NCBI GenBank assembly: GCA_037379345.1
Contig: CM074522.1
Coordinates: forward strand, 24,304,001 to 24,368,000
Direction: 5' to 3'
Length of the DNA stretch: 64,000 nucleotides
From: Perna viridis
Taxonomy: Eukaryota
The translations under genes and the position numbers were made by a program. Under the pieces are notes generated by a model. That model worked only from the letters and a program-made list of their open reading frames with translations, made no database searches and had not been told where the DNA came from. Of the stretch, positions 17,101 through 43,300 are shown piece by piece (position 1 is the first letter of the stretch; each line of letters opens with the position of its first letter).

Positions 17101-20100
17101 GTAAGTGTCATCAGATGAAGAGCTTTTGTATATGCAGCCTATGAGCAGTTTATCATTGTCTCTCAAATTTATTTATATCCATACATGCTCTTTGAAATTC
17201 GATTCAATTTTGACCTCTACAGCTTTAACTTCAGTTTTACTTATATCTTATTCCTTGCCCTTCCCCTGATGGGAAACTATGTGGGAACATCTCATAACCT
17301 ATCAGTGATAATTCACCCTTGTTAAGTTTATATCTAGAGTTCTTCGGTAAAACCTCGGCGAACATAATACTATCTGGAGGTAATTTATAATCACCCATAT
17401 AACGAAGTTTTAATTCATCAAATTTGTTTATAAAACTGTCTGCATTCGTGTAAATGCATTTTACTTCATTTAATTCGCAATGTTCAACATTTCTGGTTTT
17501 AGAAACTATTTTACCGTTTAAATTCTTTCTACCAACATAATTGTCAACTAGCACATTTACATTGCTTCGTTCAGTATCTCTATCACGTACATGTATATTT
17601 ATGTTTGCTTTGGAATCTTTACAGTTCTCATGGCCCACGGTGGGCCCCTTACTATCCCCGACTTTTCATTGTCGTTTTTTGCCTTTGCCTCTTCAAATTT
17701 CTTTTTTGTAGTTATCTCTCTTATCATTTGTTATGTCATGTGATACACTTATACTTAAGTATGGACTTTCTTTATCAGTACCTTTCAATCTAGTTAAATT
17801 CTTCATGAATGAGCGTTTTGAATCGGTCTCTAATCACACTTTTTTCACGGGTCTAGCTTTCGACTTTTCATCATCTTTTATCTCCGGTCGCTTCCCAATT
17901 CTAGTGATATTGTCATTGTTATATTCAACTTCCAAATAGGTGTTCAAATTTTTGATATGTTCAGCATCACTTTGCTTTCTAGTTGCACTGCCATCACCCT
18001 TGCATTTTTTTGCATCACGAATAATTATGTTTTTTTCCCTTAGAATACTCTCACGTTACATTTGGTACGATTGTAAATCCTGCTGGAGGAGGTAGACCTA
18101 GGGTAATAGACACAACTCTTAAAAATCATTGGAACGTTTGTATTCAGCATTTTACATAAATTTCATGTAAGCATCAAAGTAACTTGGACTGATTTCATTC
18201 TGCTTCAAATGAAAGCTTGATAGGCTATGGTGAAATTGAATATGATACAAGCATATAACTGATTTCAAGCCATGTCCGTTACGGCAGGTCTACCTCCTAA
18301 AGCAGTTCAGATAGTTTTATATAAGAGATCGAAGTCTCGATTTTAATAAAATCTTACAATTTACAGGGATAAGGCTAATTGGTATTTATGCAGTTGACGA
18401 TGATGAAGAGGCAAGTGCTCTCAGCCATTTTTCTGAAGGCGTTGATATATACTCAAACAGTTGGGGGCCTCAAGACAAAACAGGTTTCGGTAAACCTGGG
18501 ACCATTACAAATATGGCACTTAAAGAAGGTGTAACTACGGTTAGTAAATGAAATTATAATTAAATGTGTTTCTCACCTGTGAATTCCGAGAACCATCATC
18601 CGATAGAATGAATAGTTATTTTTTCCCCTTGATTCATGGATACGTAATAAGGGCATTTTACTTGAAATTATGTTGACTTGTAAAAATGCAACTAGACAGA
18701 AATTTTTTCAAACATTTTGCATCGAAACTGTTTTTTCTCTGAAATGCTTGTATCAGGGTTCCCACATGTTTGCCTTGGTGAAATTCAAGGTCTTTTCTAG
18801 GTCTTTTCACGGATTTTTCAAACAATTCGGGCATTGACATCGTGTACTAAGTTACAGCGCTAAAGTATTCCTACAAGGAGGCCAGCGAAAGCTATATTGA
18901 TAAAGTAAAGCTGACCGAGTGGTCTAGGGCGCTGGACTCTGTGCAAGCGGTGTTGCCAAAGATGTCACAGCGGTACGAGTTCGAGTCCCGCGGAGGGAAC
19001 GACAAAACATTTGTTTTGCAAATTTGACAGTTCTAACATTTTTGGAATGTTTTGCAGACCCTTTTTAAGTTCGTTTAAGTGGTAACATGTATACACATGA
19101 CTATACAAATAATTAAATGTAAGTTTTTCATCATTCAGTACGAAAGTTTCAAAATTAACCGTGTGAATTAAATAACAATACCTCTTAATTCAATTTAAAC
19201 ATATCTGTATCATGCCATATTTTTATTTGCAAAATTATCAGAAGAACATGATATGGCATTCAAATTATTTGACTGAACATGAAGGAGTAATCAAAGGAAC
19301 CAAGGTTATAGCAGTAATCAAAAGAACGCAATCCAGGGACAAAGACCAGACATGGAAAACTGACATACACAACAAAGAACATAAAGTAACTAAAATCATA
19401 CTTACAAAGTAACAAAACCAAATGAGCAACTCGGACTCCACTAAAAACTGGGAGCATGGACCAGGTGCACGGGTAGGGTAAGCGTCCTCTGCTTTTCTAG
19501 AAACAACCGCCGAGTTGCTATAAAAAATCAAGTCCGGGGTAGACAAACGAGGAAAGGAAAACTATGACCTGTTGAATAAATCAGTTTTCATGGTGCAGAT
19601 GGATACACCATAACAATCCACGAGTTCACGATGACGACCATAAAACTTCTGTAGTGATGACTTCAATCTTGTAGCAACATAACCCTGTTCCAGATGTCTA
19701 TTTGTTAGTGTTCTATAAAAATAGAAACTATCCATATAAATGTCAATAAGGCAATCTTAACGTCATGATTTTTGCAAATATTGTTCATAGTGGTACTTAA
19801 CAGCCCCTAAGGCAGTTGACTCTGTCTAACTGAAGGCCTCCATCGCCACTTAAACAAAGGGGGGACAATTTGTAAACAATAAAAAAAACATATGGATCTT
19901 TATCGATAGTTTCTAAATGACATAATTTAGTAGGAACACATCTAAATAGAGTTAAACAGACATAAATATTGCCACGAAAATGAATTTATACGAAGATGTT
20001 TAATGATCTTCAAAAAATTTTATCCGACAATATTGTCGTTGGAACTCTCCGTTACTTATTATAACACAATTTTCAACTGCCGATTTCGTTAAGATACTTC

Positions 20101-23100: not shown

Positions 23101-26100
23101 ATATGTCTATCGCTGCGTGCAATCTGTGTTTCTAACCCGTAATGACAATGTTTCTACTAAAATAGGTAACAAAAATTCTATAGATCACTGAAGCATCGAT
23201 CATCAAGGCAGATTCTATATTTCACAATATCTGTTCCTTTTAGATTCGACGTCTTATTGATTGACAACAGACCGACCATTACACCTTCCAGCCACAGTAA
23301 AGCACTAGTCAACGTGGCTTAGTCAAATAATTTACTATAGTTCTCTATTACAATTTTTAATCACATGGCTTTCCTGAGAAAGCGTTTAAATTGCTATGTT
23401 TTGTCATCATAGTTTAGATGCCCATTTCTAGAGAGGTAAGATTTATTTTATTTTATACCGGAAGTGGATGTGTTAATTTTGTTATTATTTTCTTTTTAAT
23501 CATAGCACATTATTATATTCAATGACTTTGCTCTTGTATCTATTCCGTGGCCCGACCTTTTCAAGACATATTTTAGGGGGGGGGGTTAAGTCTATACTTA
23601 ATTTTAAACAATGCTTTTGCCCCCAGCATGTCCCGGTGTCAGCACTAAGCTTGTCGTAAGAGGCGACTTAAGAGTGCCCAGAACCCTGGCTGGGGAAGGG
23701 GGGGGGGGCAGGACGCTCTGCCCACAGAGCAACCGGGTTGTTTGCCCCAGGACATGCTGGGATCATAATACAGTAAACTTGACCGCAAACCATAGTGGTA
23801 CAACGTGTTTGGAAAGATGTTGCACCATTCGCACGTTGAAAAAAGCCCTGCTGTGTATTTTATCGGAGTAGGAACCGTTATGCGTTGCCACAAGGAGGCT
23901 AAATCGACCCCATTTTTCTTGTGTCCCATACAATTTTTCATTTTTTTCATTTCATCATCATTTCATTTTCATTTAATCACCCATTTGATGTTCATATCCT
24001 GGATTTAGCTGAAATATTGCTGCTCGGACGTAAAACCCCCAACAATCATTCAATTAATCAATCAAAAAATGCTTATAAAATATGTCCTATATTCAAGCTA
24101 CATGAATATTCTTACGCAGGTATGGCTGTCAATAAATGTTAAAATGAACTCATTTTTTCCCACATTTCATTTCTTTTAAATCTTATAGTAAAATACTGAA
24201 CTCAAGGCTGTTTTAACGACTGATTTCTATGTATTTGAATGGGACCCATTCTCGTGAAACCACGGAGTCAAGAGATGAGACTTACATTTGCTTATGTTCC
24301 TTTCCTGATTATATCAGTGTTTACTACAAAATACTTATTTCTTTAGTGAGAAGATGTTGTCGTGCGTTTAAATGATTTGGTTAAAATTCAAATAAAATAC
24401 ATGTGTCTTAAGGTAAAAATAGGAAAAAAAAATCAAAAACTCCAGTGTCCAATATTGCTTATTTTTAGTGTATTAAGTCATCCTTGCATGTACATTGTAA
24501 ACATTAACAGGTTTTGTTAACCCTGTTTTTAGTATGTATATTTCGTGGTGAGAATAAAGATCAAGGTCACAAGAAAATGCATGTTAATAACGTCGAAAAT
24601 ATAATGTATGATGTCGACCTTTTAAATGACCATAATGAATAAAAAAATGACCTTGAAATTTAAAATCTAGCCTTTTTATGTTCTTGTGAATAATTTTGCA
24701 GTACTAGTAAGCTAATTACTTTAAATGTGAAGATATTAATGAAAAAAACTAAAACATGTCATTTTCTAGAAAAATTACCGATGGTTACCAACTTAACTCT
24801 TCAATTTTTTCGAAATCGAAAGATGGCACATGTCTAATATTTATATAATTTTCTTTTGCAATGACAGTACTATCCAGTTTTGATAGATAAAGCCATTAAA
24901 GGCACACACATATCTGTACTGTTTGGTGTTGAACATTACTTAAAAGGTTATTGAAAAATGAAAAAAAGTGACTGCTTTTTGAAACAATTGTAAATACTTT
25001 TATACCCTAGTATCTGAACATATGGATGTTACTACTCATGGAAATTAACTGTATTATTATCAAGTAGTTGTCAAACTATCTACAGTAGAAATTTATAATC
25101 ATGCTAATGTCTGTATTAATGGTTTCCATGGTAACAAGTCCATTGATATTGTAAAATTTCCCATTCGGTAGTTAAGGTAAATGCTAAATGTTGGTTTCCA
25201 TGGCAACGGGTTTGCAAAAATAAAGATTTAAATTAAGTTCGATGTTTAAATGTCAAATAGATATATTTTAAAAATTAAAAAAAAGAATGGAAAGTTTCCA
25301 AATGATTTTGATCCATACAGATAATGGCTTTTAATCTCTAATAAATACAGGGTAGAAATGGAAAAGGTGCTATTTACTTGTTTGCCGCAGGCAATGGAGG
25401 AACTTCATACGACAACTGTAATGCTGATGGATATGTAAACAGTATCTACACTATCGCCGTAACAAGTGTTGAACAGGGACAAAATGCCTGGTACGCAGAG
25501 GTCTGTGCTGCTGCATTAACAGCTGCTTACGGTGGAAGTGATGGATTAAAATTGGTAAACCATTTTGTAAATTGTTTATATATTCTATAAAGCTATCAGG
25601 CTTAATGTAACATTCCTAAATATACTTTTAATTTTGTGCAATTTAGATTAGTAAAGCCTTGGTAATTTAGCACTTTAAGAATGTATTAACATACTTTCTA
25701 GTATGAACCCTTTTTATAATAAAGGATCATTCAGCCACGCATATTTGTTTTGTGTATTTCGATTGTTGAATATAAAGGCAGGGAAAATAAGTGGAAACAG
25801 TGTATCTTATATGTACCGATGGACGGAATATATAATGAATTAATATATTTTCTTTTTATGTGAATAAAACCAATTCTTTTTTAACTATGATATATATTCT
25901 TACATTTCAGACAACAACAACTACCAGCGCAGGATGTACGATCAATAATATTCAGGGCACATCATATTCTACACCATTAGTGTCGGGAATTATAGCCTTA
26001 ACATTGGAGGCAAAGTAAGTTTTTTTTTATTCCAAACCATAACAAAGACATATGTTTGAAAAGCCTTACGTTCCATAATTCCTTTACCCGCGGGAATGTG

Positions 26101-29100
26101 ACAAAACCAATCTACATAATCTTTTCAAAGACTTTTTTTTTATTTGAAATGGCATTATCATTGTTTTATACTTTTAAACCATACAATGCAACCCCGTATA
26201 GATAGAAGAATTAGGATTGATTTTGCATACGATGTGGACATTACTTTTTGTAGATTTAAAGTGGTCTGGAGCAAGCATTTCAGTTAACAGCAAGTAGTCC
26301 TTAGTTTGTGCATTTGTGTAATTTATATTCAGTATCTTTGTTTCCGACCTTTTTGAACTGATTTTTAGGTGTGTTTAATTGTGTAATATGTTTTTTACAG
26401 TGGCCAGATTTTAAAGGTGCAGAGTTGTGATCACGCCAAAGTACTTTAAAAATGTGTGTTTAATTGTGCAATATTTTTCCACATTGGCCAGATTTTAAAG
26501 TAGGAGGGTTGTGATCACGCCAAAGTACTTTAACCCCGCCGCATTTTTTGCGTCTGTCTCAAATCAGGAATTTCTTGCCTCAGCATGTCTTATTTCGTTT
26601 TCACCATTAGTTTATTTTTTTGTTACTCAGTATATAGGGGCAACTCTTTTGTTGTACCTGTGTATAACGATGTTTTGGGACCAGCCACAGCCTGCCCTGT
26701 GGTTTGAGGATTTCATCGTCGTTCATTGAAGACCAATGGGTGCCTTGGGCTGATATTTTAAACCCGGTGCGGTTGTTGTCTCTTTGACATATACACCAAG
26801 GTTATTATCGTGCAATTGTAAATAACAGTGTCATAATTCATATAAAATGAATAAATTTTATCCTTAATATGACATCTTTCAAATCTCAATCCAGAAAAAC
26901 CTAATACACTATTTTAGACACAACTTCCTGAAAAATGTTAAGTAACTCTCTTTGTAAGAATGATGCAAAATCTGAAAAATGTGTTACACTCCAAAAAAGG
27001 CTACATATTTGTATTTTTTAATTAAGTTGTTTTCTGGGTCTATACTATGAAATGTGTAATTATTCATTCAAATCTGCCTGCTCTTAGGAGATAATCGACA
27101 TTGAAAATCCAATAGATTCTATTGTATTTGGGTGTCATTTACAAGTTATCTCAGTTAATTTTGAAATCTACAGTGCATTCTAAATAATTTTTATCCCCTA
27201 AGAACACGGGTTATATGAAAAATTGAACGTTAATTTCTGTTTACTGTGACAATTCAAGCAAAATATCAAAAATAAAAATATGTAGGCTTTTTACCCATGA
27301 ATCACATGTTGCATGATTCTTAGCTGGAATGCTACTTAAATTATTGTGTATTCCTATTTCTGCTGTGAATGTTAAATATTCACTGTTATTTTCCTTTTAA
27401 TAAAGTACGCGAATATATAAAAATTGTTTGAATAGCACATGGTGATCACTAGGTTCCTTAAAATAAAAGCCCTTTTTAATTTGTCAAACCAAATACCTGC
27501 AGTTATTTCATATGTCTTATTGATACATAATAAGGGTGCCATTATTTATTGCTCCATAAAGTAAACTATTTTAGGCCAGAAAATGAAATCGCCGCGATTG
27601 AATCACTCAATTTTTATTGGATCCCTTTCTGAGTCTGCTCTGCTGGGTAGCTCTACTATTGTAAGTACCTGTTAATTCTTACTGCATTATGATCACTACC
27701 AATATGCGTTTTTTTTGGTGTTATTGTCATATTGCTTAAGGTTGAGTTCTTGTGTAGCGTCCTGCTTTTTATATGCATTCTTTGTGTGTTTTTTTGGTAC
27801 ATTACGTGCATTTGTTTGTAGAACGTCTTTCCTTTCTGTTTTCTTCCGGAACAGGGTTATGTTGCTACAAAAGTGAATTTGTCCCTACATTTGTTCAATT
27901 GTCAGTTTACCTTTCCTCTTTTGGCTCAAATCGGCGTGTGTCTATAGAAAAAGCTGAAGACGCTTACCCTACATATGCACCTGGACCATGCTCCCAGTTT
28001 CTAGTAAAGCCTTAGATGCTCATTTAGTTTTGTTTCTCTGTTTTGATTTGGTTATTTCATTTTTTATTGTGTTTGTCTGTTTTCCCTGTCCAGTCTTTGA
28101 TATCTTTGTTGAAGAATATTTTGTAGGCGCTCGTTATATTGAGTATGTCATTCTTTGCACAATGAAATAGATCTTTGTGGACTTAGACAGATGACCAGTC
28201 CACATGAGTCCGGTTCGAGTTTGATTCGGTCAGGGTTTGCTCTACCAAAGAAGTAATTATGTCGTGTACTTAACTTTAATCATCATATTTTCCCGATAGT
28301 AATGATCTAACATGGAGAGATATACAGCATCTGATAGTGATGTCTTCAAGTTGGCAAGGTTTTAAAGACACGTTTGGTAATTGGACAATGAATGGTGCAG
28401 GAAAAAATGGTAAGAATTAAGTAGTAGTATAAAATAAGACAGATTAAGTGGCTTGTAACTGTTACTGAATTAGAAATAAAAGTTGGTTTGGTGGGTTTGT
28501 TATATGCCTGAATCGCCTCCTGTCTAATTTTTATTTAGACTGTTTCTGAAGATGTTGCATTCACACATACAGTGTGTATATTCTACACGACTTGCATAGA
28601 AAATGTACTGATTATATGGCTGTACAAAAATACATACAACAAAAAACAGGGTTCTGTCTCGCTTGTAACAGTAGACAACGATGAAAGAACTAAGCTTTAA
28701 ATTAAGCATTTATTTGACGAATTCTGAAAATTGAAGATAGATCTGTTTGTGTACTGCCCCAGGCGGCAGCAATTTTAACCAAAGTTAGGGGCCAGGCAAG
28801 AAAAACTCAACCTGGTGAATTTATTTTATATTAGTTTTTTCTATATGATAAAAAGTACAAAATACAATGAAATAATTAAAAAGGAGTTCGAGTAACATAA
28901 TCGCTATACACCAATAACTATTAAATTTCAAATGATGAAACGTCAAAAAATGTGGGGAAGATTTGTCCATGTTGAGGGACGATATACCTTTCCTGGGGGA
29001 ACAGGATGTCCATATCGACGGTCCAATTGAGCTGATAAAATAAATTACATGAATATAGCAAATGCTGTTCACTCAGAGGTGTACTCGCGTAAACATGGCG

Positions 29101-32267: not shown

Positions 32268-35200
32268 GTCTCAGATTGTGACGACTCTATTCTCTACACT
32301 GCTCCATCGGATCAAATTGATACAGGGAAGATAACGTAAACTTATAGAAGGGTCTGAAAAATTCCCAACGATGTTAGAACTGTCAAATTTGCGAAGCAAT
32401 TTTTTGTCGTTCCCTCCGCGGGACTCGAACTCATACCGCTGTGACATCTATGGCAACTCCGCCTGCACTTAAGTCCAGCCCCCTAGACCACTCGGCCAGC
32501 TAGGCTATATAAAAATATAGCTTTTGCTGGCCGGGTGATTCCTCCTCGTAGGATTAATCTAGGGGTGTAACTTAGTACACGATGTATGGTAGTACGGGAC
32601 AGTTCATTTAGGTGTTCTTATGTAGGATAGAGGATCAAATTAACGATGCATGTCACAACAAATCAATATTATACAACGTCTCAGAATGTGACGACTCTAT
32701 TCGCTACACTGCTCCGTCGGATCAAATTGATACAGGAAAGATATATAAACGTATAGAAAGGTCTGAAAAATTCCCAACGATGTTAGAACTGTCAAATGTT
32801 TTTATATATATATGATCAAACTGATACAGGGAAGATAACGTAAACTTATAGAAGCTATATTTTTATATAGCCTAGCTGGCCGAGTGGACTTAGTGCAGGC
32901 GGTGTTGCCATAGATGTCACAGCGGTACGAGTTCGAGTCCCGCGGAGGGAACGACCAAAAATTTGCATCGCAAATTTGACAATTCTAACATCGTTGGGAA
33001 TTTCTCAGACCCTTCCATATATATATCATTGTGGGTAAAATACTGTATTCATCTCAGTAATATCAGGAGTTGTGTCCATTACCCTCGGTCCGCCTCCTTA
33101 AGTAGCACTCTTTGTAAGAATCATTCAAATTTTGTAATATGTGATACACCCTGCTCTTAGGGGATAATTCACATTATTTATAATTTATATCTCCTTTGGA
33201 CAAACCACATGCTAATTTCTGTTCACTATATCACTTTAAACAAAATATGAAAAATAAAAATATGAATAGGCTTTCCAATAATAAATCAAATTTTGCATGA
33301 TTCTTTCTTTAAACAACCCACATGCTAACTTCTGATTACTATATCAATTAAAAAAAATGTCAAAAATGAAAATATGTAGGCTGTCCAATAATAAATCACA
33401 TTTTGCATGATTTTTAGCTAGATAACTCTTCTTAATTAATCATTTCTTTCAGTGTGCATTCTTCTAATGTAATCATTAAATAGAACGTTGTAAACAATAC
33501 CAATCCAGGGAACCAGGTTATAGCGGTAATTAAAAGAACGCAATCCAGGGACAAAGACCAGACACGGAAAACAGACATACACAACACAGAACATAATGTA
33601 ACTAAAATAATACATACAAAGCAACAAAAAGCAAATGAGCAACTCGGACTCCACTAAAAACTGGGAGCATGGACCAGGTGCACCGGTAGGGTAAGCGTCC
33701 TTTCCTTTCTAGAAACACCCGCCGAGTTGCTCATAAAAAGTCAAGTCTGGGGCACTCTTGTTTCCTTTTGTTAAGAAATTTAAACTGGTTGTAAGACACA
33801 CCCGATTACAATAGATGGGTAAATATTATTGGTCAGTATCAGCTTACTGTCCAGTAATTAAAATGGTAAAATAACTAAGGTACGAGATCACAATTAATTC
33901 CACTTGATTTTTATTGTGTTTTATCCTGATTCTATTTTTTGGTCCTTGCTGCGGAAATGTACGTAGGACCAGAATCGACATTACATTGAATTTTGTTTTA
34001 TTCTGCAATTTTGTACAGGAGTTGTGATTTGGTCATGTGAAAGAATGTGAAAATTTAGGATATTTGGCAGTGGTCACTCCTCATGTCTACGGGGTCTCTT
34101 ATCATTGTTGTTAAAATACAAAATGTTGGTATTTTTATTCTGCAGCACTTGCATGAATTTTGTTTTATGTATGATTTCTATATTAGTGAAGTGTATTGAG
34201 TTTAAAGCAGTGGATTTTATATTAGTTATAATAGGTCTGTTAAAATGCATTACGAAATCAATTGTGGTCCCTACCATACGTAGGTGGCAGAATAACCTAC
34301 TGAGTAGGCTTGCATAAAAATAAAATTGCCGTTTATTCTGTGATGAGACAAGATACACCAATAAAACTTTCAATGTAATTTGAGCATGTTAATACTAATT
34401 GTTGAAATTACGAAATTTCCTTTTAAGAGTCACCCAATCGTTCCACTACAAATTTACATTGCAGTTAGTCAAGTTCTGGGCTTTGGTTTGATTGATGCAC
34501 ATGCAATGGTAAACAGTGGAAAAACATGGTCCACTGTCCCTCCGCAGCAGATGTGTGAACAAACTAAACCGTAAGTACATTTGTTATGTTTTTTTTTTCA
34601 TTTTATTATTAATGTATATGTAAGCAGTTTATTTATAAACACGAAGGGGACATATAAAATCTGTACACTTATCCTAATCCTTTCACCTTTACTAATAGGG
34701 AATGCGCTGAAGATTTTATTTCAGCTAACGGTTCAGACAAATTCAAAAAATTACAAAATACACTGGTTTAAAAATTTTCATTGTCAATTGTGCATAGAAT
34801 TGAAGGTTGAAATATAGCAAAAATTGAAAAATTAACCACGTACGGGTAAAATAGTCGATTTCATGTGGCTTTTTTATGTAGAAAATACATTTAAAATGGT
34901 AATACGGGGTAAAACGAAAAACTAAACTTCTACAATGTGAACAAATCTGTTTTCTTGGTTCAGAAGGCCACACCGAAAGAATCGACGAGGCCATTTTATA
35001 GGCCGTAAAGCAGTGATGAATTTGTTCCAATGTTAGAAAGAAAACATGGAACTAATCTTCTGTGGGCTCCGGTATAACGTTTAAATAGCCATAGATAAAT
35101 CAAAACTAATCTTCTGTGGGCTCCGGTATAATGTTTACATAGCCATAGATAAATCAAAACTAATCTTCTTGTAGCTTCCGGTATAACGTTTACATAGCCA

Positions 35201-38200
35201 CAGATAAATCAAAAATCGACAATTTGAAATGACAAATCACCACAGTTGCAGAATATACCATCTGTAAGATTTACTTCTCCGACAGTTTTTAGTAATAAGC
35301 AAGATACGAACCTTCGGGATTCAAACAGGTCCTATTTATATACCAATTTGTTTTTTTTTGTGTTTTTTTTACTACTCTTGACGAATACATTGTCTGTCAT
35401 TAGTTATGTTAGTCATCCTCTGTGAATTAAGAAAAAAAACAGTGTAGTTCAGATGCAGTTTTACAAAAATAGAAAGAAAAATGCTGAGTACCATGACAGT
35501 TAAACTTGTCTAAACCAAAGCAAACTTGTGAAATATCCTTTGAATCAGACAGGTATTAGATTTTTTGGAATGGTCGTGGTCAACGCAAGAGGGACAAGAG
35601 GTCTTATTCCTAATTGATATTAAAACCGTGTTCTTTTGTTTTTGTTTTGTTTGAAATTTTTGTTTAAAACTATCCTTCATTTTGACATTCTTATACATTT
35701 TCTATTACAGAAATATACAAGAAAACTATTCTACTTTGACAATCGCAGCAATTGGTAATTGTTCGTCAATCGGATACCTTGAACATGTAACTGTAGATGT
35801 CACGTTCTACTATTCTCGTTTCCGAGGTAACACTTTAATTTACCTCATATCTCCGTTTGGAACAAGAAGTAATTTGCTTCATTATAGATATTACGATGCG
35901 GCTGATAACATCTCAGAAGGCACCCATACCTGGAAGTTTATGTCCGTACATTTTTGGTGGGAAAAACCTCATGGAACATGGATTTTGGAGGTCACTCCTG
36001 ATAATCCCTCGTTTTCAAATGGTAAAGTATCTTACTAATCAAGTTACTGTCTCAACGATTTCGCTCCAATAGAACTGTCAGGCATGACTCCCAAAGGAAT
36101 ATATCGTGTCACAAGACAGTCTTTGAAAGATATGATTACCAACGTTAACCCTGTAAACAACTCCGTATTTAAGTAATATTTATCTATAGTCACAATATTT
36201 GCCTCTTTCATTGCGCAGTAAATCTTTCCATTAAACTAACAATCATGATATCACGTAATGGTAAAAGACCCTAGGTATCCGATATGCATATGTACTGCCA
36301 CCACAACATGGATACAAATATGGCTACAAGTCTCCATGTGCAATGCAGGGGAATGACACCAAGTAAACATGCCCTCGTTAAGGTTATAAATTTAAAACAA
36401 ACTTGAATCAATCATGAACAAAAAAACTATTCTCTTAGTTTTGGAATGACATGAGAGACTTAAACATTTATATATTTGGTAACTAGATATCAACCAAACT
36501 GTGGTATCCAGTGTGTATACATTTACCTTAGACCGGCTAGTGCTCCAAAACGAGTGTCAATACAAAACATCAATAATATTTTAAAACTCTCGAATACTAG
36601 TATTTGAATAAAAGACACCACGATATCATAGTATATTTATTAAAATTCGACCGCTTGATACTTTCGTAAGCAGAATGGACAATCACACAGCAGTTTGAAA
36701 AGTTCAGAAAATTCAGACATGAAGTTACTTTCGTAAGCAGAATGGACAATCTCACAGCAGTTTGAAAAGTTCAGAAAATTCAGACATGAAGTCATTCGTG
36801 CATGCCAAAAACCAACAAAGTTAACTTTTTAAAACATCTGATTCAGAAACAGATACAGACCATATATTTTGTGGCATATAACCAGTTTTAGTTTCCCGTC
36901 CAGTTTTTGCACTTTCGAAAGTAAAATTATATATATTATGTATGAAATTGGTACGTTGAGTTTTTTTCTGATTTGGTATGTTTTGGTAGTTTTTAGTGTA
37001 CGGAATGTATGGTGTTTGAGAAATACAGATCAGAATACAGACATGATGTATCAATTCATTGTAATAAAACATACGAGACCGAAAGAAGCAAAATTTGTTT
37101 AGTGGGTTGCCCAACACCATTAATCAAATCTGTCGCGACAAAAAAGTAGAAATAAACTACTCTACAAGGTTAACAAATCATTAAAATTTTCTCAGTGATA
37201 AATAAATACTTCAGATTCTCTTTCATCTCAGACATAATGATGTGTTTGTTCAGTTGTATAGACAAGCAGAAATGTCAGTGCCTGGAATCGACAAAACTTT
37301 ACTTTTCGCAGTCGACACTATTGACTCAATGTGGTTATAGTTTGGAGATATGCATAAGAGCAGATTTATTTTTCACATTTTTTTCAAAGTCCTTTCGATT
37401 AAACGCGGATTTGAAACCAAATCATGTATTAACAACTCTGCGAATATTTCCAGAAAAGCATAGTACGCTTACCGTATTGATTTACATATACTTGTTGTCT
37501 ACTCCAAATATGGCTTGTTCATTTATTTGTAAGTTTCTTTGTGTATATTTTTGTATATTTGTGTAATGTATCGTCAATACCCTGTTTGCCGTTCAATTAA
37601 TAATAATGTTATTTTGTATAACGTGCTTTTAAATAATGGGTTACAATTAAACTAGCGAAATAACAAAATCAAGACTTGAATTACAGTTCATTATTTGTGG
37701 TATATTTCAATAAAAATCACGGACAGCAAAAAAAAAAAAAAACCTGTAATTTACGTCGATATGGTTCAGCAGCTTGAAGTTCAACTAATCTAAATCCGAT
37801 TCATAAGTTGCTTCATTGTTAATGAAATGTAAACTGTCCTCAAAATGTTATTACACAGCGTAGGTCGAACATTGAAAATATTCCTAAATTTACCCAAAAG
37901 ACAGATTGAAACTAGGGTTTAAGACAATTATCGCAAAAAGCGTTTTTATTGATTGTTACGCATGGTCTAACTTTATTTGAAAAAATCTGACAATCCACGC
38001 CACGTGACTATGTGTATTCATGGAACCCGTACTCGAACTCAAATTGTTGAGGAGTGACGACTGCAGTCTTGTAAACGAAAACCATTGATGCATAAAACGG
38101 TAAAAATATTATACTTAACTATTTCTCAACTATAAAGAAATAGTGATTCAAAATAGTAAATTCTGACGTTCTAAGCAGGTTAGTAATGCAATTGGAAGTT

Positions 38201-40192
38201 GCAAAATAAACACAGATCGGTTTTCGGGTTTCAACGCTTTTAGCAGTAAATTCCGGGAAAATACTTTTTCTGTAACAATAATTATACGCCGGATTGCTAC
38301 AGTTAGTTGATTGCAAATTCGCCAGAAATTACAACACCAGTAATGTTATTGATTTGAGATATGTACTCACATTACGAACGCTCTTAATGTACTCACCTTA
38401 ACAATCCATTAATTTTCTCAATCACGTCGTATGTTCGAAATCATTTTCTTCCTAAAGTATTGTTTTCGCATATTTAACTTCTATTTCATGACACATAAAG
38501 TGTTTTTGCTTTTCTTTAATTTTCAGTGCATATAAAAAGTTGGAAGATAACGTTGTATGGAACAGAAACAGATCCTCGACAAGGTATTTAAACAAAGATC
38601 TATTAATGGGAATGTACTGCGCGCTGCTGATTGTTACTATGGATATTTCCCAGTTTTTTTTGGGGGGGGCGGGACTGGGGGGGGGGGGGGGGCTCATGCC
38701 TATACAATCAAAATATCAATAATTACAAGGCCAATTCATTATCCTCGTTAGATCAGAACATATGATAGTACATATTTTGATGTAATGCAATTGTAACTAA
38801 TAACTCAAAATTTATATGTTGTATAATTCATGGCAATGCCAGGTTGCACTTTAAGAAAAAAATATCTATCTCGTATGATTGGTATAGTCATATCTGACTG
38901 TTCATTTGTACGAAACTTTCTTGGCTGTTTTTTTTTAATCTATGTGTTCCAAAAACTGTGTCTAATTTGGTACGATATTTTAGTCATTTAGTTTCATACT
39001 CGTCATAGTCTATGAATGTAAGTAGATTTGAATGTTACAAATTAACAATTTTTTGCATAATTGGCATTGAATCACCCATTCCAAAGTCTTTAATTGACGA
39101 ACTTTGTTTTACTTCATTTGTAAATACATACATTTTATCAACGTTCTAAGTAAAATTCAATCTGAACCCAGATTACTGTGGAAATACTTTAATTCGTTGG
39201 TACCAATTTTCATGGTTTATGGAAGAAACTTCTGCTGTAGAATATTGAATTTGTTGATTCGACAACTTAGTTTAATAAATGAATGAAACATTAACTTTCC
39301 GGTGGGGATCTAACTTTCATGGTTTATCAAACAAACCAAAACCATGAAAATTGGGACCCAACGAACAATGATACTTTCACAGCACTTCTTTCGATTTATG
39401 CAGTTGTACAGCTAACATAAATTTGAAATATCCAACATAACGGGCAAAATAATTAACTTTAGTAAATTTTGTACGACAGAGCATTACAAGGGAATTAAAT
39501 GATTGTTCTTTTATGTAAAAAATATGTATAGAGCAGAATACTATAAACTTGTCGATTTTCGTTATTTACGCAGAGGACAAACAAAAAAAAAAAAAAAAAC
39601 GTTTACAGTACTAAATCCTTGACGTAATATTAATCTGGTGTATTTGCTAAATTTTTTATATTAAACCAATTTCCGTATTAATGTTTACATATTGATTTTA
39701 GATCAAGTAAATGATGGTTCATCTCCACCATCAACGTCTTCTGATTCACCGATTACAGTTACTTATGTATCAGATACAAAAACAGCAGAAACAACAAAAA
39801 CAACTACTGATGAACACGAAACTACTACGGATACACCAGTAACAACCACCGATTCGCCAACAACAACTTCGGATACTATTATACAAGAAACAACTACAGA
39901 TACACTAGTACTGGAAACAACTACAGATACACTAGCACAGGAAACAACTACAGATACACTAGCACAGGAAACAACTACAGGTACTCTAGTACTAGAAACA
40001 ACCATAGTTGCTCGAGCAACAACCAATGATATTCCGACTACTTCAGATGTAACGAGGCCTGCCCAGTCTACAGCGATAACGGGTAGTGCATCATCGACAG
40101 AGCTAAATTTTGATTCTGGTAGCATCCGTACTATTAATTATAGCATATACATTATAATGATATTATTGATCTTATCAGTTTTAATAATTTGA
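1453..40192 (+). CDS. Furin/kexin-like proprotein convertase (S8B + P domain), 14 exons, ~788 aa, with mucin stalk and predicted GPI signal
   Basis: Exons 1453-1782, 5629-5745, 6403-6483, 7568-7696, 10934-10998, 13277-13365, 18367-18539, 25351-25554, 25911-26014, 28300-28409, 34465-34570, 35711-36021, 38527-38583, 39702-40192. All introns GT-AG with matching phase; total 2367 nt, no internal stop. Motifs: AIVDDG (Asp), RHGTQVAG (His), SNSWGP, AAGNGG (oxyanion Asn), GTSYSTP (Ser), LTWRDIQH, LEHV...SPFGT...WKFMSVHFWWE (P domain). Confidence 0.93.
3128..3610. mobile_element. MITE with ~65-bp TIRs and 9-bp TSD
   Basis: TIR CATCCTCCCAAGTCAGGG...GACATAACTCATTCAT and its inverse; TSD CTCTGAGAT at 3119-3127 and 3611-3619. 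Confidence 0.9.
5629..5745 (+). CDS. Convertase exon 2 (prodomain, RKSRTKR)
   Basis: ttttttcag| acceptor and |gtaagt donor; 39 codons; prodomain-like ...RTKRSIS... Confidence 0.85.
5978..6192 (+). mobile_element. ~210-bp MITE family (Kolobok-like termini); other copies 18086-18300 and 52753-52951 (inverted)
   Basis: TIR (TTAA)GGAGGTAGACC / GGTCTACCTCC(TTAA); shared body taacttggactgatttcattctg...gaaagcttgatagg. Confidence 0.7.
6403..6483 (+). CDS. Convertase exon 3 (IISVEQSVAHIRKTR/TLDPEWKNLWHL)
   Basis: Matches furin WLEQQVAKRRTKR...DPKFPQQWYL; ctag| acceptor and |gtaag donor. Confidence 0.9.
7568..7696 (+). CDS. Convertase exon 4 (catalytic Asp)
   Basis: [31 protein letters not shown]. 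Confidence 0.95.
8134..8175. repeat. (TA)n microsatellite
   Basis: Direct reading. Confidence 0.95.
9122..10068. mobile_element. Foldback-type element, almost entirely an imperfect inverted repeat (~950 bp)
   Basis: Arms pair from the ends (taaaagtcgcgaaa / tttcgcgactttta) to near the centre (catgttgacttttt / aaaaagtcaacatg). Confidence 0.85.
10934..10998 (+). CDS. Convertase exon 5
   Basis: DTANDKDVYGGDNDPYPPTGD; phase 0 to 2. Confidence 0.9.
11690..12070 (+). repeat. Degenerate satellite-like tandem repeat, 3 units of ~145-175 bp
   Basis: gaatttNgactgaa...cagtNacNNNNatgata at ~11697, ~11843 and ~12019. Confidence 0.7.
12091..12520 (+). mobile_element. tRNA-Leu-containing ~410-bp element (family B), copy 1
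   Basis: tRNA-like segment 12361-12454 with A box and B box (GTTCGAGTC); terminal direct repeat ggaatttttcaNacc at 12091 and 12505. Confidence 0.8.
13277..13365 (+). CDS. Convertase exon 6 (catalytic His)
   Basis: RHGTQVAGLAVAVKDNNICTVGTAFKATLIG. Confidence 0.93.
13895..14637 (-). mobile_element. Non-autonomous Helentron (HINE)-like element with ~155-175-bp tandem core
   Basis: Ends AACAAGAGG... and ...GGCCTTCGGCCAGGTGAGCTAA; (GAC/GACG)n microsatellite; three aagggcaataactc-type units. Related copy at 60073-60700. Confidence 0.75.
14900..18050 (-). mobile_element. Decayed CR1-clade LINE (ORF1 remnant, APE endonuclease, RT)
   Basis: KCIYTNADSFINKFDELK (APE); KSTGSDKIHP...LFKKGD...NYRPVCLTSVICKIMEK (RT); GHCMKVVKRRCRLDVQKYF (CR1 C-terminus); many stops and frameshifts. 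Confidence 0.85.
16778..16907. mobile_element. 130-bp palindromic MITE (PIF/Harbinger-like ends) nested in the CR1
   Basis: GGCGTCGATTTCACAAAAAGTCGTAAGTGTAAA ... TTTACACTTACGACCTTTTGTGTAATCGACGCC. Confidence 0.8.
18367..18539 (+). CDS. Convertase exon 7 (SWGP, substrate-binding loops)
   Basis: IRLIGIYAVDDDEEASALSHFSEGVDIYSNSWGPQDKTGFGKPGTITNMALKEGVTT. Confidence 0.94.
18838..19060 (+). mobile_element. Family B tRNA-containing element, 5'-truncated copy
   Basis: gctgaccgagtggtctagggcgctggac...gagttcgagtcccgcggagggaacgac. Confidence 0.8.
19285..19710 (-). mobile_element. Family A PLE 3' end with RT C-terminus
   Basis: Translates GYVATRLKSSLQKFYGRHRELVD..., followed by the conserved 3' region. 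Confidence 0.8.
21807..22286 (+). mobile_element. ~480-bp non-autonomous retroposon (family C) with (CAAT)n tail and 11-bp TSD
   Basis: TSD TCCTAAGGCAA at 21796-21806 and 22287-22297; tail GGCGTTAAACCCCAACAATTAATCAATCAATC. Confidence 0.85.
22556..22588 (+). ncRNA. Degenerate minimal type-I hammerhead ribozyme in the Penelope 3' region
   Basis: CCC-CTGACGA-AGGCC-ATAA-GGCT-AAAA-TTT-GGG; the expected CGAAA has become TAAAA. Confidence 0.6.
23617..24063 (+). mobile_element. Family C retroposon, divergent second copy
   Basis: Shares blocks AAGCTTGTCGTAAGAGGCGACT, CTGCCCACAG, CGCAAACCATAGTGGT, GCACGTT, GGAGTAGGAACC, GGAGGCTAAA and the tail; imperfect TSD AAACAATGCTT/AAAAAATGCTT. Confidence 0.8.
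25351..25554 (+). CDS. Convertase exon 8 (oxyanion Asn)
   Basis: [35 protein letters not shown]...WYAEVC. Confidence 0.95.
25911..26014 (+). CDS. Convertase exon 9 (catalytic Ser)
   Basis: TTTTTSAGCTINNIQGTSYSTPLVSGIIALTLEAN. Confidence 0.95.
26360..26800 (+). mobile_element. Interspersed repeat fragment with ~85-bp internal duplication; second copy 49335-49500
   Basis: gtggccaga...gggttgtgatcacgccaaagta...aaccccgccgcattttttgcg shared by both loci. Confidence 0.65.
26948..27322 (+). mobile_element. MITE-like family; other copies 33108-33420 and 42471-42841 (inverted)
   Basis: Termini tttgtaagaatNatgcaaa / ttgcatgattctta and shared internal sequence. Confidence 0.6.
28300..28409 (+). CDS. 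Convertase exon 10
   Basis: NDLTWRDIQHLIV...WTMNGAGKN. Confidence 0.94.
28750..29860 (-). mobile_element. BEL/Pao LTR retrotransposon remnant
   Basis: ELQVFSDTS...IAAAVYLR...LGKAKVAPKP...ELYTAVLAVE (Pao RNase H region); YRSQWKRVQSLAQTFW and PVGAII...DNRARKAEV...PVTEI (integrase C-terminus). LTR boundary uncertain. Confidence 0.75.
30490..31050 (-). mobile_element. Family A PLE 3' portion (Naiad-like, RT C-terminus)
   Basis: SQLIHNGRYCHTYADFLCRARLLTMRLLEQDYVATRLKSSLHKFYG...LVDRY; the ORF ends with no downstream endonuclease. Confidence 0.8.
32265..33017. mobile_element. Family B compound insertion: 1.3 tandem units (-) plus inverted partial copy (+), in (TA)n
   Basis: aacgtctcag recurs at 32265 and 32675 (period 410); strand switch near 32852; TA tracts on both flanks. 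Confidence 0.85.
33505..33750 (-). mobile_element. Family A PLE 3' end; further copies at ~4640-4760, 27935-28100, 42147-42350, 43376-43505, 53565-53720
   Basis: Close match to the shared core. Confidence 0.8.
34465..34570 (+). CDS. Convertase exon 11
   Basis: VSQVLGFGLIDAHAMVNSGKTWSTVPPQQMCEQTKP. Confidence 0.94.
35050..35214 (+). repeat. 54-bp tandem repeat x3
   Basis: aactaatcttctgtgggctccggtataacgttta...agataaatcaa at 35050, 35104 and 35158. Confidence 0.9.
35711..36021 (+). CDS. Convertase exon 12 (P domain)
   Basis: YLEHVTVDVTFYYSRFRGNTLIYLISPFGTRSNLL...WKFMSVHFWWEKPHGTWILEV. Confidence 0.94.
36659..36792 (+). repeat. 67-bp near-perfect tandem duplication
   Basis: tactttcgtaagcagaatggacaat...cagacatgaagt at 36659 and 36726. 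Confidence 0.9.
38527..38583 (+). CDS. Convertase exon 13 (end of P domain)
   Basis: VHIKSWKITLYGTETDPRQ carries the W.L.LYGT motif; phase 1/1. Confidence 0.9.
39174..39382. mobile_element. Tc1/mariner-type MITE
   Basis: Inverted ends tactgtg...ttcgttggtaccaattttcatggttt / aaaccatgaaaattgggacccaacgaa...cacagca. Confidence 0.6.
39702..40192 (+). CDS. Convertase exon 14: Thr-rich stalk + C-terminal hydrophobic (GPI-type) signal
   Basis: ttttag| acceptor, phase 1 matching exon 13; ETTTDTLxx repeats; ends DSGSIRTINYSIYIIMILLILSVLII-stop. Confidence 0.8.
39887..40003 (+). repeat. Coding 27-nt minisatellite (ETTTDTLVL/ETTTDTLAQ, ~4.3 units)
   Basis: gaaacaactacagatacactag... recurs at 27-nt spacing. 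Confidence 0.9.
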
Positions 40193-40388
40193 TTTGAAAT
40201 TGATGCCATGAGTTAGGATATAGATTGATAGGATTGACTGTCTTTCCTTACTTTCTACCGCCTGTACTTTCTGCCTTCCTTCCGACAACATCTTAATTAT
40301 TTTTTGCAATATGTATATATGCTGTTTTACGTTTGATTACTTTCTGTGATACATTGTGTATGGAGGGTTAGAACATAAGTACCAAACT

Positions 40389-40394
40389 AATAAA
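40389..40394 (+). terminator. Candidate polyadenylation signal of the convertase gene
   Basis: First AATAAA, ~200 nt after the stop codon. Confidence 0.4.
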
Positions 40395-43300
40395 ATATAG
40401 GTAGTTGTCAAAAAGGAAAATATGTATAACAAATGGCAATATCAGGGCAAAAACCGGAATTTGGAAAACAACTGAAGTGTTCCTGACCTGGTGCAGGCAT
40501 TTCAATATGAAAGCTGGATTAAAACAGGTTTAATAGCAAACTAAATCTCCCGCTACAATACTGCTGGAAGGAGTGTGATCAAACTTGGCATGACCTTCAC
40601 TTACAATATCCTTATTTATCTGTGTGTATTAATTTACGATCTGGCGATAAACCATGGCCATTCGTCAACAAATGGTTCTAAGTAAGCTAAGTTCTAAGAT
40701 ACGCAAGAAAACTAAGGTTCTATCATTGATTAAATGATTTCTGTGACATAGGAACAGTATGGTCAACAGTCCAATTTTGAGTTATTGCTTTAATTTATAA
40801 GACTTAAAAAGGCTAATTATGACCAGTTGAGCAATTCAGGCTTTCGACAGCCTCTAGTTTGTTTACTTGACCCAAACCTCCAACAGGCTTACAGTCCCTG
40901 AAGCGATCCCGGCAACGCTTTGACGGATCGATGACCGTTGACTGGTGACCGATCTGATCGCAGTTTTGTTATGTAAAATGACGAATGAATCGTAAAAATT
41001 AAACACATGTACAAAAAAGTATATTAAAAAGTAAATTGATGTTCAAATTTATTGCATAATGTAAATATGTGTAAAATTGACAGAGAAAACACTGGAAACT
41101 GTAAAATATATTGACCGCTCTGTGGTCACGTGATGCGATCACCGGTTTGATAGGTAGGTTTGACGGATCGATGACTGATCGGAATTTTTGTTGTACGGAT
41201 CGGTTCAGGTACTGTATCAAGGCTGGCGAGCGATACTGACTCGGTAGAGATTTTGTTGATATATAGGTAAATGAAGGCGATAAAAATGAAATGATTCTGG
41301 TGCAAAAAAAGTTCTTTCATATTTAAACATTAGATCAAAACACAACCATTCGAAGTCAACAAAATATTGAATCAAATTGAAAAAAGAACATTAACCCAAT
41401 GACATGACTAAGGTTCTTTATAATGCCATGAGGTTCATTTATGTCTAAACTAAAACAAACATCTCACGACAGAGAAATAGATTTAAAGAAACTATACAGT
41501 GAAACAATAATGCATGGGTGCACAATTAAAGTGGGAAATAAATGTACATCGCGAATAACTAAGAAAATCCATAGAATGTCTTTAACACGTCGGACTCCAA
41601 ACAATAACCAACATTTCTAATAGATTTGAAACAACTGACACATCTCAAGTCTCCTACCTCAAGGCATAGAGTGAATATGGTAATAATAACACAGGCTCAT
41701 AAAACAACTTAGACTCCTAAAACAGCCCATAGAATAAATTTGAAACATCATATAGGAATAGGTTTGACTCCTGACATAATTCATACAAAAAGTCTGATTG
41801 TAACAGTAGTTCCCGGAATGTTTACTAAAACGGTAATTTCTTTTTTAAGACAAGGTTGAAATCACTTAAAAAATTTATGGACAGTAATGTTATGAGTTTC
41901 AATACCGATCAAGAAGAGTTTCTTAATTCACATCCGGTTCAGTCTGGAGTATGAATATCCAAAAGCACCAGTAAAAACAAACAACAGACACAGCTAATCC
42001 GGTTTAAATCGAAACCGTATTTGACTTTATAATTATTGTTATTCTCAGACGATTGCTATGCGTAGAATACAGTCATCAAACTGACATAGTATTCATTGAA
42101 ATACATGTGGTTTAGATAAGGTTTATGGAATGTTTAAGGTATGGTAGAGTAATAAATGGAACCAAGGTTATAGCGGTAATCAAAAGAATGTAAACAAGGG
42201 GCAAATACCAGACATGGAAAACAGACATACACAACAAAGAACATAAAGTAACTGAAATCATACATACAAAGTAACAAAAGCAAATGAGAAACTCGGACTC
42301 CTGTAAAAACTGTGAGCATGGACCAGGTGCACCGGTAGAGTAAGCGTCATTTGGTAAAAACAAATTACGATGTACACATCAAAATCAAACAATTGTTATT
42401 TTGTGGCTAGAGAGAAAAAGCAGACAGTTATTTAAAGATTAAATCTCTGAAAGCATTAAGTACCACTGCGGTTAAATATCATGCAAATGTGATTCATGTC
42501 TGAAAAGCCTACATGTTTTTCATTTTAATAATTTGTTTGAATTGTAATAGTAACACAGAAATTAATATTGCGTTTTTCATATAACCTGTGTTCTTAGGGA
42601 ATAAAAATTATATAGAATGCAATAAAGATGTCAAAATCAAGGGAGATAACTCTGACACTCAAAAAACGATATAATCGATTGGATGTCTGATGTTGATTAT
42701 CTCCTGAGAACAGAGAGATTGGAATAAATAATTACACATTAAATAATAAATACCCATAAAACAAGTTAATTACAAAAATAACAATATGTAGCCTTTTTAA
42801 AGGTCTATCACATTTTCAGTCTTTGCATGATTCTTACAAACTTGAAGACAGTTACTTAAATCATCTTTATTTATAAAATAAAAAACCGTCTATAAAATAA
42901 TTCAAGTTTCCTTTCAGTATGAAGGCTTTTGTTATTGCAGTTACAACCATTTTTAGCGTATTCCAATTAAGACGATTACAAAATACAATATCTTAATTGA
43001 TTAAAAAGGACAAAAACTGTTCATTAAGATTACAACATAGGTCCGGAGGTTTATGTATTTTGACAATTTTTTAAAAAAAATAATCAAATTAGAAAAAAGA
43101 AAGAAAAAAAAAACACACATCATTTTGACATTTATTTATTTTTATTAAAAAAATCATTTTGATTTTTCATTGTAATGCAGCAACTCTTCCCTGTATTAAA
43201 CGCTCAATTCTCCCTTCCACATTTTTCCGTTCCCCTGGCCCAGCGTCACATTGTCCATGCCATATTCATACTAATCATTATTTACGCGTAATAAATATTG

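Follow-up and report, generated by a model that had tools for sequence, protein, structure and literature searches.

Does the open frame at 39702-40192 on the forward strand of this stretch of Perna viridis DNA close a protease gene, and if it does, how would the encoded enzyme be held at a membrane? The window, by which we mean the whole 64,000-nucleotide stretch analyzed, carries the exons of a furin/kexin-type convertase (MEROPS S8B) upstream of this frame. The frame fits them as the last coding exon, and we put at roughly even the chances of the reading as a whole, in which it closes an intact gene of this type and its hydrophobic end most likely serves for attachment of a GPI lipid. An earlier note, made from the sequence alone, had assigned the exon to such a gene; Pfam matches to the catalytic (S8) and P domains, together with furin and kexin as the best solved structures, bear out the assignment.

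A convertase gene spread over colinear exons

Exons were placed on the forward strand by Pfam searches and by comparison with two Mytilus proteins, P0005 (XP_076100234.1, M. galloprovincialis) and P0152 (XP_071161258.1, M. edulis), both uncharacterized RefSeq predictions named "neuroendocrine convertase 2-like." The first coding exon (1453-1782, 3' end approximate, within an open frame at 1432-1812) starts at ATG 1453 and encodes a hydrophobic N-terminal stretch that is a likely signal peptide, together with short acidic repeats and the first part of the pro-region; residues 38-77 of P0152 align to 1663-1782. Two further pro-region exons between 5626 and 6483 (about 5626-5751 and 6412-6483) were located by tblastn with P0152 and P0005 and carry the motif R-K-T-R, which aligns with R-R-A-R of Mytilus just before the mature enzyme. 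No Pfam match to a pro-domain was obtained in the pro-region exons.

The subtilase catalytic domain follows with its Asp, His, and Ser triad and oxyanion Asn all present. The Asp motif (DDG) lies at 7547-7693 (PF00082, E 1.4e-4), the His motif (HGT) at 13278-13376 (E 6.4e-6), and the Ser motif (GTS) at 25905-26012 (E 8e-7), each also aligned to P0152; PF00082 matches were found in five exons, three of which reach or exceed the curated cut-off. Another catalytic exon (25351-25542) contributes the oxyanion Asn within GNGG as well as a CN-x-DGY motif and aligns with furin residues 172-234 of solved structures (E 9e-16). A small catalytic-domain exon at 10934-10978 (limits approximate) is weak on its own in tblastn with P0152 (E 0.12) but colinear, and the exon with the WGP loop of the substrate subsites (18366-18536), placed by alignment to P0152, is more divergent than the other exons and had no PDB match at E <= 0.001. 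The exon that closes the catalytic domain (28304-28405) and the one at the junction with the P domain (34467-34556) show 62% and 73% identity, respectively, to P0005 by tblastn.

The P (Homo-B) domain comes directly after the catalytic domain. Its main exon, exon 12 (35711-36021; acceptor ...tattacag, donor ATG|GTAAAG, one base left over), matches PF01483 at E 1.4e-16 and furin 1p8j at E 1e-14; matches of the P domain to furin and kexin structures range from E 1e-14 to 4e-8. Exon 13 (38527-38583; donor AAG|GTATTT, one base left over) supplies the last P-domain strand and ends in ...LYGTETDPRQ. All of these upstream exons are open and the catalytic motifs intact. The top sequence matches of the gene were models from Mytilus, oyster, Mercenaria, and unionids, and the nearest relatives are all bivalve. 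Over alignments of about 390-450 residues, the gene is 57-61% identical to the Mytilus RefSeq models, with all exons colinear.

A terminal exon with a Thr-rich stalk and a hydrophobic end

The terminal exon starts 1.1 kb after exon 13 on the same strand and in a compatible phase, behind an acceptor ag at 39700-39701; the G left over from exon 13 joins the first two bases, AT, to give Asp, and the frame continues. From 39704 to 40189 the exon translates into 162 codons with neither a stop nor a Cys. The order that the earlier note had read here, a P domain followed by about 130 Thr/Ser/acidic residues, D-S-G-S, IRTINYS, 15 hydrophobic residues, and a stop, was reproduced by translation, composition, and repeat finding. 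The stalk part (39702-40111) resembles a mucin-like linker: its composition over the first ~135 residues is 35% Thr, 10% Ser, 9% Asp, and 7% Glu, its GC content of 40% is like that of the other exons, and it includes 5.2 copies of a 27-bp (9-residue) tandem repeat at 39862-40002 (Tandem Repeats Finder score 189, 87% matches). Next come D-S-G-S (40112-40123), the candidate GPI omega region, and the polar spacer I-R-T-I-N-Y-S (40124-40144), together 40112-40144, and then the 15-residue hydrophobic C-terminus (40145-40189) and its TGA stop (40190-40192). The first AATAAA 3' of the stop, at 40389-40394, is a possible poly(A) signal, a weak indication in AT-rich DNA.

The statement that the protein has neither a Cys-rich region nor a cytoplasmic tail holds in the gene model: no Cys-rich open frame occurs between exon 13 and the stop codon of the terminal exon, and zero residues follow the hydrophobic run. 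A misread TGA would conceal no long tail, since the frame meets its next stop 8 codons further on. No homologue of the terminal exon was detected in the species' own genome or among proteins of 89-283 residues, and no predicted protein in public collections carries it. The phase-1 junction from a ...YGT-x-x-DP exon into a Ser/Thr exon is nevertheless common to the window gene, its own paralogue L033, and Mytilus locus L045, as are the motif and phase of exon 13.

Support for the junction 38583|39702 was sought in three RNA-seq runs, of which about 1.6-1.9 Gb each were read. Neither exon 13 nor the terminal exon was covered by any read and no junctions were seen; exon 12 drew only one or two reads in the same runs.

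A bivalve family in which the cytosolic tail is repeatedly lost

The earlier note regarded the gene as a convergent design and perhaps an undescribed class of convertase. This view did not survive a search for relatives, which showed that the gene does not stand alone: dozens of bivalve gene models share one order, with S8 and P domains followed by a Ser/Thr stalk and a single hydrophobic segment. The linker after the P domain is Ser/Thr-rich or EGF-containing, and the family, which appears specific to bivalves, is predicted to have no Cys-rich region. Tails were counted in the 142 gene models whose P-domain end is recognizable. Cytosolic tails of at least 7 residues occur in 77 of them, with lengths of 7-45 residues among the tailed members; in 19 the hydrophobic segment lies at or within 6 residues of the C-terminus (12 reach it), and 46 have no such segment. 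Most relatives are predicted to be ordinary type-I membrane proteins with a short tail, and beside them the window gene reads as a tail-less variant of this family.

Near-tail-less models form a minority. Those of Mytilus include P0174 (M. trossulus) and P0208 (M. galloprovincialis); Crassostrea virginica contributes P0225 ("kpc-1 isoform X2"), and Sinanodonta woodiana P0218 and P0220. Like the window gene, these combine S8 and P domains with a linker or stalk and no real cytosolic tail, but the tail sequences are unrelated and the losses are independent events; judged from these models, tail loss recurs in the family. At the P0208 locus, the anchor exon has TAG as its final codon, which removed the tail; the old tail exon is still recognizable downstream, and the protein keeps a full 24-residue transmembrane run. 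The literature searched contained no experimental study of any of the five.

In P0005 and P0152 a Cys-rich region is likewise lacking, the ...YGT-x-x-DP exon leads through a phase-1 junction to about 140 residues of Ser/Thr stalk, and the hydrophobic segment is almost C-terminal. They differ from the window gene in the anchor. In Mytilus a separate small exon, about 0.7 kb past the stalk exon, encodes a Gly/Ala/Val-rich anchor of 20-21 residues with one Lys behind it as the last residue (...TYATK or ...TYAAK in the models). The anchor of the window gene is Ile/Leu-rich with a 15-residue core, is encoded on the stalk exon itself, and ends at the stop. Both Mytilus and the paralogue L033 encode the anchor on a distinct exon further downstream, so the fused arrangement appears to be the derived one, and the fused anchor, at only 13% GC, may be young. 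A GC content of 13% is also the look expected of exonized intron sequence.

How the hydrophobic end may be used

The proposal that the C-terminus has the layout of a classical GPI-attachment signal agreed with a check against textbook rules, in which small omega residues, a spacer, and a terminal hydrophobic run were all found. With D or S as omega, omega+2 is G or S (D-S-G or S-G-S, exon residues 137-140); the spacer is 7-8 residues, the hydrophobic end 15 residues, and 24-25 residues lie past omega. GPI anchoring of the window protein is thus plausible on the layout of its tail, with a probability that we put slightly short of even.

Two other uses of this end have to be weighed against GPI anchoring, and we consider each of them unlikely, though to be taken seriously. 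The exon could be used as modeled while its hydrophobic end simply stays in the membrane as a tail-less type-I anchor, a truncated form of the family transmembrane segment that is never exchanged for GPI; close relatives do carry transmembrane segments with tails of 7-45 residues at the same position, and P0208, which lost its tail to a stop codon, demonstrates that such forms arise in the family. The run without charged, polar, or Pro residues is, however, only 17 residues long in the window gene, against a median of 23 (quartiles 20-25) in tailed relatives; its hydrophobic core is 15 residues, it has no basic flank, and the small residues and polar spacer in front of it are the layout of a GPI signal and not of a stop-transfer sequence. 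Short hydrophobic C-termini without cytosolic residues are typical substrates of the GPI transamidase. The other possibility, of similar weight, is that the hydrophobic end is missing from the mature mRNA, either because splicing leaves the stalk exon at a weak internal donor and joins an unrecognized anchor exon or because the tail is intron read-through in a silent or decaying gene. The ancestral layout of Mytilus and L033, in which the stalk exon closes on a phase-1 donor and the anchor follows on an exon of its own, speaks for this, as do the RNA-seq runs without reads on the exon and the GC content of the tail, which at 13% is below even that of the neighboring intron (31%). Both GGT codons near the stalk end also provide weak donor-like phase-1 GT sites, 40082|40083 and 40118|40119 (CTG|GTAGCA), but the +4 A and +5 G of the donors used in the gene model (GTAAAG and GTATTT) are absent from both candidates (GTAGTG and GTAGCA). 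No other convincing anchor exon was found within 8 kb downstream of the terminal exon; the sole hydrophobic candidate, at 45141, is 5 kb away and contains Lys. In addition, an in-frame 15-residue hydrophobic run with a stop is rare in the noncoding DNA of the window (at least 13 hydrophobic residues among the last 15 at 4 of 7,926 six-frame stops), and the open upstream exons with their intact motifs argue against decay.

Two further readings would remove the exon from the protein altogether. If the intron after exon 13 were retained, read-through from 38583 would add two codons (G-I-stop), and a soluble, secreted enzyme ending at the P domain, with neither stalk nor anchor, would dominate; several relatives' models do stop just past the ...YGT motif (e.g., P0163 and P0193), but these may be truncated predictions, and the donor AAG|GTATTT is ordinary, so we regard this outcome as improbable. 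More improbable still is a chance juxtaposition, in which the Thr-rich frame would lie outside the convertase gene and either be a low-complexity repeat or belong to another gene. The sequence is indeed of low complexity, with a 120-residue open frame on the opposite strand as well, and the exon has no homologue detectable by sequence; against this, it lies on the same strand and in a compatible phase behind a good acceptor 1.1 kb past exon 13, a Ser/Thr exon occupies the same position and phase in L033 and Mytilus, and an open frame of 163 codons is itself unusual in DNA of 33% GC.

Comparison with other convertases and proposed mode of action

The catalytic and P domains of furin, PC5/6B, and PC7 are homologous to those of the window gene, and among solved structures furin matches best (E 1e-14 to 9e-16). 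In our model, a single C-terminal hydrophobic segment tethers the window protein as it does the vertebrate membrane-bound convertases. The latter have cytosolic tails with sorting signals and cycle between the TGN and the surface; PC7 is also without a Cys-rich region. The window gene differs from them in that it has no tail, its C-terminal exon encodes no Cys, and its stalk is long and mucin-like; both the Cys-rich (furin-repeat) region and the cytosolic sorting tail of the furin and PC5-6 type are absent. Six groups of bilaterian kexin-like proteins have been recognized (bioRxiv 10.1101/802215). The note's further parallel, a surface kexin with a GPI signal in Pneumocystis, is sound as far as the fungus is concerned, since the kexins of Pneumocystis carinii are described as surface proteins with a predicted GPI anchor (PMC7940399). 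These PRT1/KEX kexins form an expanded fungal group with subtelomeric genes and have been linked to the processing of surface antigens. A common origin of the Ser/Thr and GPI module with theirs was considered and rejected, as the terminal exon has no homologue detected in the species' own genome or among proteins of 89-283 residues and the nearest relatives of the gene are all bivalve; to judge from the sequences, the likeness is one of functional analogy only.

If the terminal exon is used and GPI anchoring applies, the protein would enter the ER and then cleave its own pro-region at the basic site. The Thr-rich stalk of about 135 residues, extended and probably O-glycosylated, would hold the catalytic and P domains off the membrane, and the short hydrophobic C-terminus, with zero cytosolic residues behind the small residues and polar spacer, would serve as the membrane-anchoring segment in the window copy. 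Its most likely fate would be cleavage by the GPI transamidase near D-S-G-S and attachment of a GPI lipid. Such an enzyme would be a cell-surface protease that cleaves its substrates, for which the note suggested mucus, shell matrix, gamete, or immune proteins as candidates, after basic residues, without the tail-driven TGN recycling of furin, and phospholipase could shed it from the surface.

Gene model and expression

Pfam Peptidase_S8 matches lie on exons upstream of, and on the same strand as, the terminal exon (39702-40192, + strand), and a P domain lies at 35711-36021 (exon 12; Pfam, E 1.4e-16); the best solved-structure matches are furin and kexin. With the Mytilus edulis protein P0152 (XP_071161258.1) as guide, thirteen colinear exon matches, none of them interrupted, run from 1663 to 38576 and contain the DDG, HGT, GNGG and GTS motifs; the hydrophobic stretch behind the ATG at 1453 resembles a signal peptide. 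On checking splice sites, we found that exon 12 ends at the donor ATG/GTAAAG and that exon 13 (38527-38583) opens after the acceptor ...ttttcag, encodes the last P-domain strand (...LYGTETDPRQ) and closes on the donor AAG/GTATTT with one base left over; from 39702, after ...gattttag, the frame reads on as Asp-Gln-Val-Asn.... The terminal exon fits as part of the convertase gene, and the predicted junction joining 38583 to 39702 rests on splice-site logic and on a position and phase conserved in relatives. Retention of the intron after exon 13 would bring a stop after two codons (38583-38590), and the product would then be soluble, with the P domain at its end.

Of the catalytic exons, the one that encodes the WGP subsite loop (18366-18536) resembles furin least and has no match among solved structures at E ≤ 0.001; its loop reads WGPQDKTG, compared with WGPGELTG in P0152. 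Because this exon is so divergent, subsite preferences beyond P1 may differ from those of furin. Short acidic repeats (D-I-D-R/K-R-D-F...) occupy 1540-1640 near the N-terminus, and in P0168, a relative from Mytilus edulis, the corresponding end holds a 19-aa unit in ten tandem copies; the insertion of repeats ahead of the pro-region or inside it seems to characterize the family.

The earlier note had looked to RNA-seq for support of the last junction. We searched roughly one-fifth to one-quarter of three raw RNA-seq runs (same species label), together with one contig set, over 35600-41500. Neither exon 13 nor the terminal exon was covered by the sampled runs or the contig set; exon 12 received one or two reads, from one run, and no splice junction was seen across the region in the sampled runs. 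This result is neither for nor against the gene model. No predicted protein in public collections carries the terminal exon, and a search of a 5.8-billion protein collection with the P-domain exon returned no candidate fragment from P. viridis. RNA depth at 40.3-41.3 kb is repeat-derived: reads and contigs cover short stretches at 40424-40459 and 40920-41310, and their ends enter unrelated sequence. The covered stretches represent transcribed copies of dispersed repeats and do not form a 3' UTR of the convertase gene. Separately, the intron contains a G-rich tract at 38655-38695 (runs of 8 and about 14 G). RNA reads at this tract carry a C>G difference relative to the assembly at position 38670, along with a 31-base joint that goes back; this suggests a repeat family or local assembly uncertainty.

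The terminal exon and its hydrophobic tail

The window (contig C12, 24304001-24368000, of a 723 Mb assembly) is AT-rich, at ~33% GC. Translation of 39704-40189 gives 162 codons free of stops and of Cys. The first ~135 residues form a stalk of 35% Thr, 10% Ser, 9% Asp and 7% Glu, with a 27-bp unit repeated 5.2 times in tandem at 39862-40002; the exon then ends in D-S-G-S, the spacer I-R-T-I-N-Y-S, 15 hydrophobic residues and a TGA (40190-40192). The layout described in the earlier note, from composition to stop codon, is thus confirmed exactly. Even with the TGA discounted as an error, the next in-frame stop lies 8 codons on, so the exon hides no long tail. In the window, most of which is intron and repeat, at least 13 of the 15 residues before the stop are hydrophobic at 4 of 7926 six-frame stops, this tail among the four, and a random read-out is therefore very unlikely. 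GC content is 13% in the tail, 40% in the stalk and 37-47% in the other exons; the tail is lower even than the adjoining intron (31%). The terminal exon is probably the real C-terminus of the protein.

A bivalve family with recurrent tail loss

HMMER with the P-domain exon, a cluster look-up and a word search seeded by the best full-length hit consistently returned bivalve gene models as the nearest proteins (Mytilus species, oysters, Mercenaria and unionids), which are 57-61% identical to the window exons. Their automatic names disagree (NEC2-like, furin-1-like, PCSK4/6-like, kpc-1, aex-5-like), and they share a common order: S8 and P domains, ...YGT-x-x-DP, a linker rich in Ser/Thr (which in some models includes an EGF-like motif), one hydrophobic segment and a short tail. 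Among 142 models with a recognizable P-domain end, 77 have a tail of at least 7 aa (45 of 7-45 aa and 32 longer), 46 have no such hydrophobic segment, and in 19 the C-terminus is at the segment or no more than 6 aa past it; in 12 of the 19 the segment itself reaches the C-terminus. Models ending at or a few residues past the segment include Mytilus P0174 and P0208, Crassostrea virginica P0225, and Sinanodonta P0218 and P0220. At the P0208 locus of M. galloprovincialis (L046:46671-47703), the transmembrane or anchor exon ends ...CTT TAG/gtatgt, with the stop as its last codon in place of the Lys/Arg codon that opens the tail in paralogues; the former tail exon is still recognizable ~0.9 kb downstream, 65-73% identical to the paralogues' tails, and M. 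trossulus P0174 has the same truncated end. Since tail-less models occur in several genera and the cause is visible at P0208, tail loss is recurrent in this family of stalked convertases.

In the P. viridis genome, P-domain matches number 23 and fall at about 21 loci, several of which are grouped in tandem (for example C4:40.72-40.89 Mb, C13:0.53-0.59 Mb, and C2:8.08 and 8.22 Mb), a complement far larger than the seven kexin-like genes of vertebrates; Mytilus has dozens of family models. The P exons of two C4 copies translate identically. Downstream of divergent P-domain exons at three loci (L034, L035 and L036, at C2:8.08, 58.12 and 8.22 Mb) lie repeated exons with thrombospondin-type-1-like motifs (W-S-x-W-S-E-W...C-P), joined at L035 by WAP-like Cys-rich open frames; the modules may be unusual C-termini of convertase-like genes or may belong to neighboring genes.

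Origin of the anchor and mode of attachment

In M. galloprovincialis locus L045, the stalk exon ends with a phase-1 donor and the anchor is on a separate small exon ~0.7 kb further. The closest P. viridis paralogue is L033, which lies 21 Mb away on the same chromosome and is 70% identical in the P exon. Its entry to a Ser/Thr exon of ~400 aa is likewise phase-1, that exon closes on a good donor (ACAG/GTAAAA), and 5 kb downstream lies a likely anchor-plus-tail exon. In the window gene, by contrast, the anchor is contiguous with the stalk. An alternative anchor exon was sought in all + frames from 39.6 to 64 kb without a convincing find; candidates at 45141, 44233, 46984, 48.5 kb and 53.5 kb were weak or repeat-derived. 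Donor-like sites near the stalk end are only weak (CGG/GTAGTG at 40082/40083 and CTG/GTAGCA at 40118/40119). Given the contiguous anchor, the weak donors, the lack of a downstream anchor exon in that scan and the 13% GC, the simplest history is that the ancestral donor was lost and the frame would have run on into AT-rich former intron that by chance encodes an Ile/Leu-rich tail. DNA alignment of the tail with the start of the L033 intron was too dissimilar to show homology, the terminal-exon protein matched only itself in its own genome, and it had no match in the 89-283 aa band of the 5.8-billion protein collection. If the donor-loss history holds, the anchor would be young.

A tail-less C-terminus of this kind could be a transmembrane anchor or a signal exchanged for GPI. 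Classical GPI rules call for small residues at omega and omega+2, a polar spacer of ~5-10 residues, a hydrophobic end of ~12-20 and nothing cytosolic. Our rule check bears out the claimed GPI-signal layout, with D or S as omega and 24-25 residues after it. Charged, polar and Pro residues are absent over a run of 17 aa here, against a median run of 23 (quartiles 20-25) in tailed relatives, and the tail lacks a basic stop-transfer flank. With this layout, a short run and no basic flank, the sequence appears to favor GPI exchange over a tail-less transmembrane anchor. The protein is a candidate for GPI anchoring in vivo on this rule-based call, with chances that we place just short of even, and the earlier interpretation is partly supported.

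Discussion

In vertebrates, the trafficking of the type-I proteins furin, PC5/6B and PC7 is directed by their tails, whereas the window gene is tail-less. A survey of metazoan kexin-like genes described six bilaterian groups with lineage-specific duplications and made no mention of GPI (bioRxiv 10.1101/802215). The expanded kexins of Pneumocystis carinii, to which the gene had been likened, have indeed been reported as surface proteins with a predicted GPI anchor and an unknown function (PMC7940399; PMC6345417), but they are analogues and not kin. In the literature searched, we found no paper on a GPI-anchored animal convertase or on the present bivalve family.

The proposal of a dedicated, undescribed convertase class does not stand as worded, as relatives with S8 domain, P domain and stalk are widespread in bivalve annotation. 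The window gene is instead a tail-less, GPI-signal-like variant in a bivalve-wide family of stalked, membrane-tethered convertases that is visible in databases but unstudied. With the family already in public annotation and the GPI call rule-based, this is a modest, testable curiosity. We tentatively propose, as something a little less likely still than GPI anchoring of this one protein, that furin-like convertases with a mucin stalk and a membrane tether have undergone a lineage-specific radiation in bivalves, shedding the cytosolic tail repeatedly, and that the window gene and the Mytilus, Crassostrea and Sinanodonta models are genuine GPI-anchored convertases, the first in animals. If true, these would be raft-resident, phospholipase-releasable surface proteases outside furin's TGN cycling route.

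Convertase biology rests on vertebrate enzymes placed by cytosolic tails or by secretion. GPI anchoring, if it occurs here, would be a third placement route for an animal furin-type protease: permanent display from a long, glycosylated stalk attached to the outer leaflet. The finding also draws attention to a large, unstudied expansion of bivalve convertases, within which anchor type varies among paralogues and species, and this natural series of tailed, tail-less and GPI-like forms would allow tests of how anchoring sets substrate choice.
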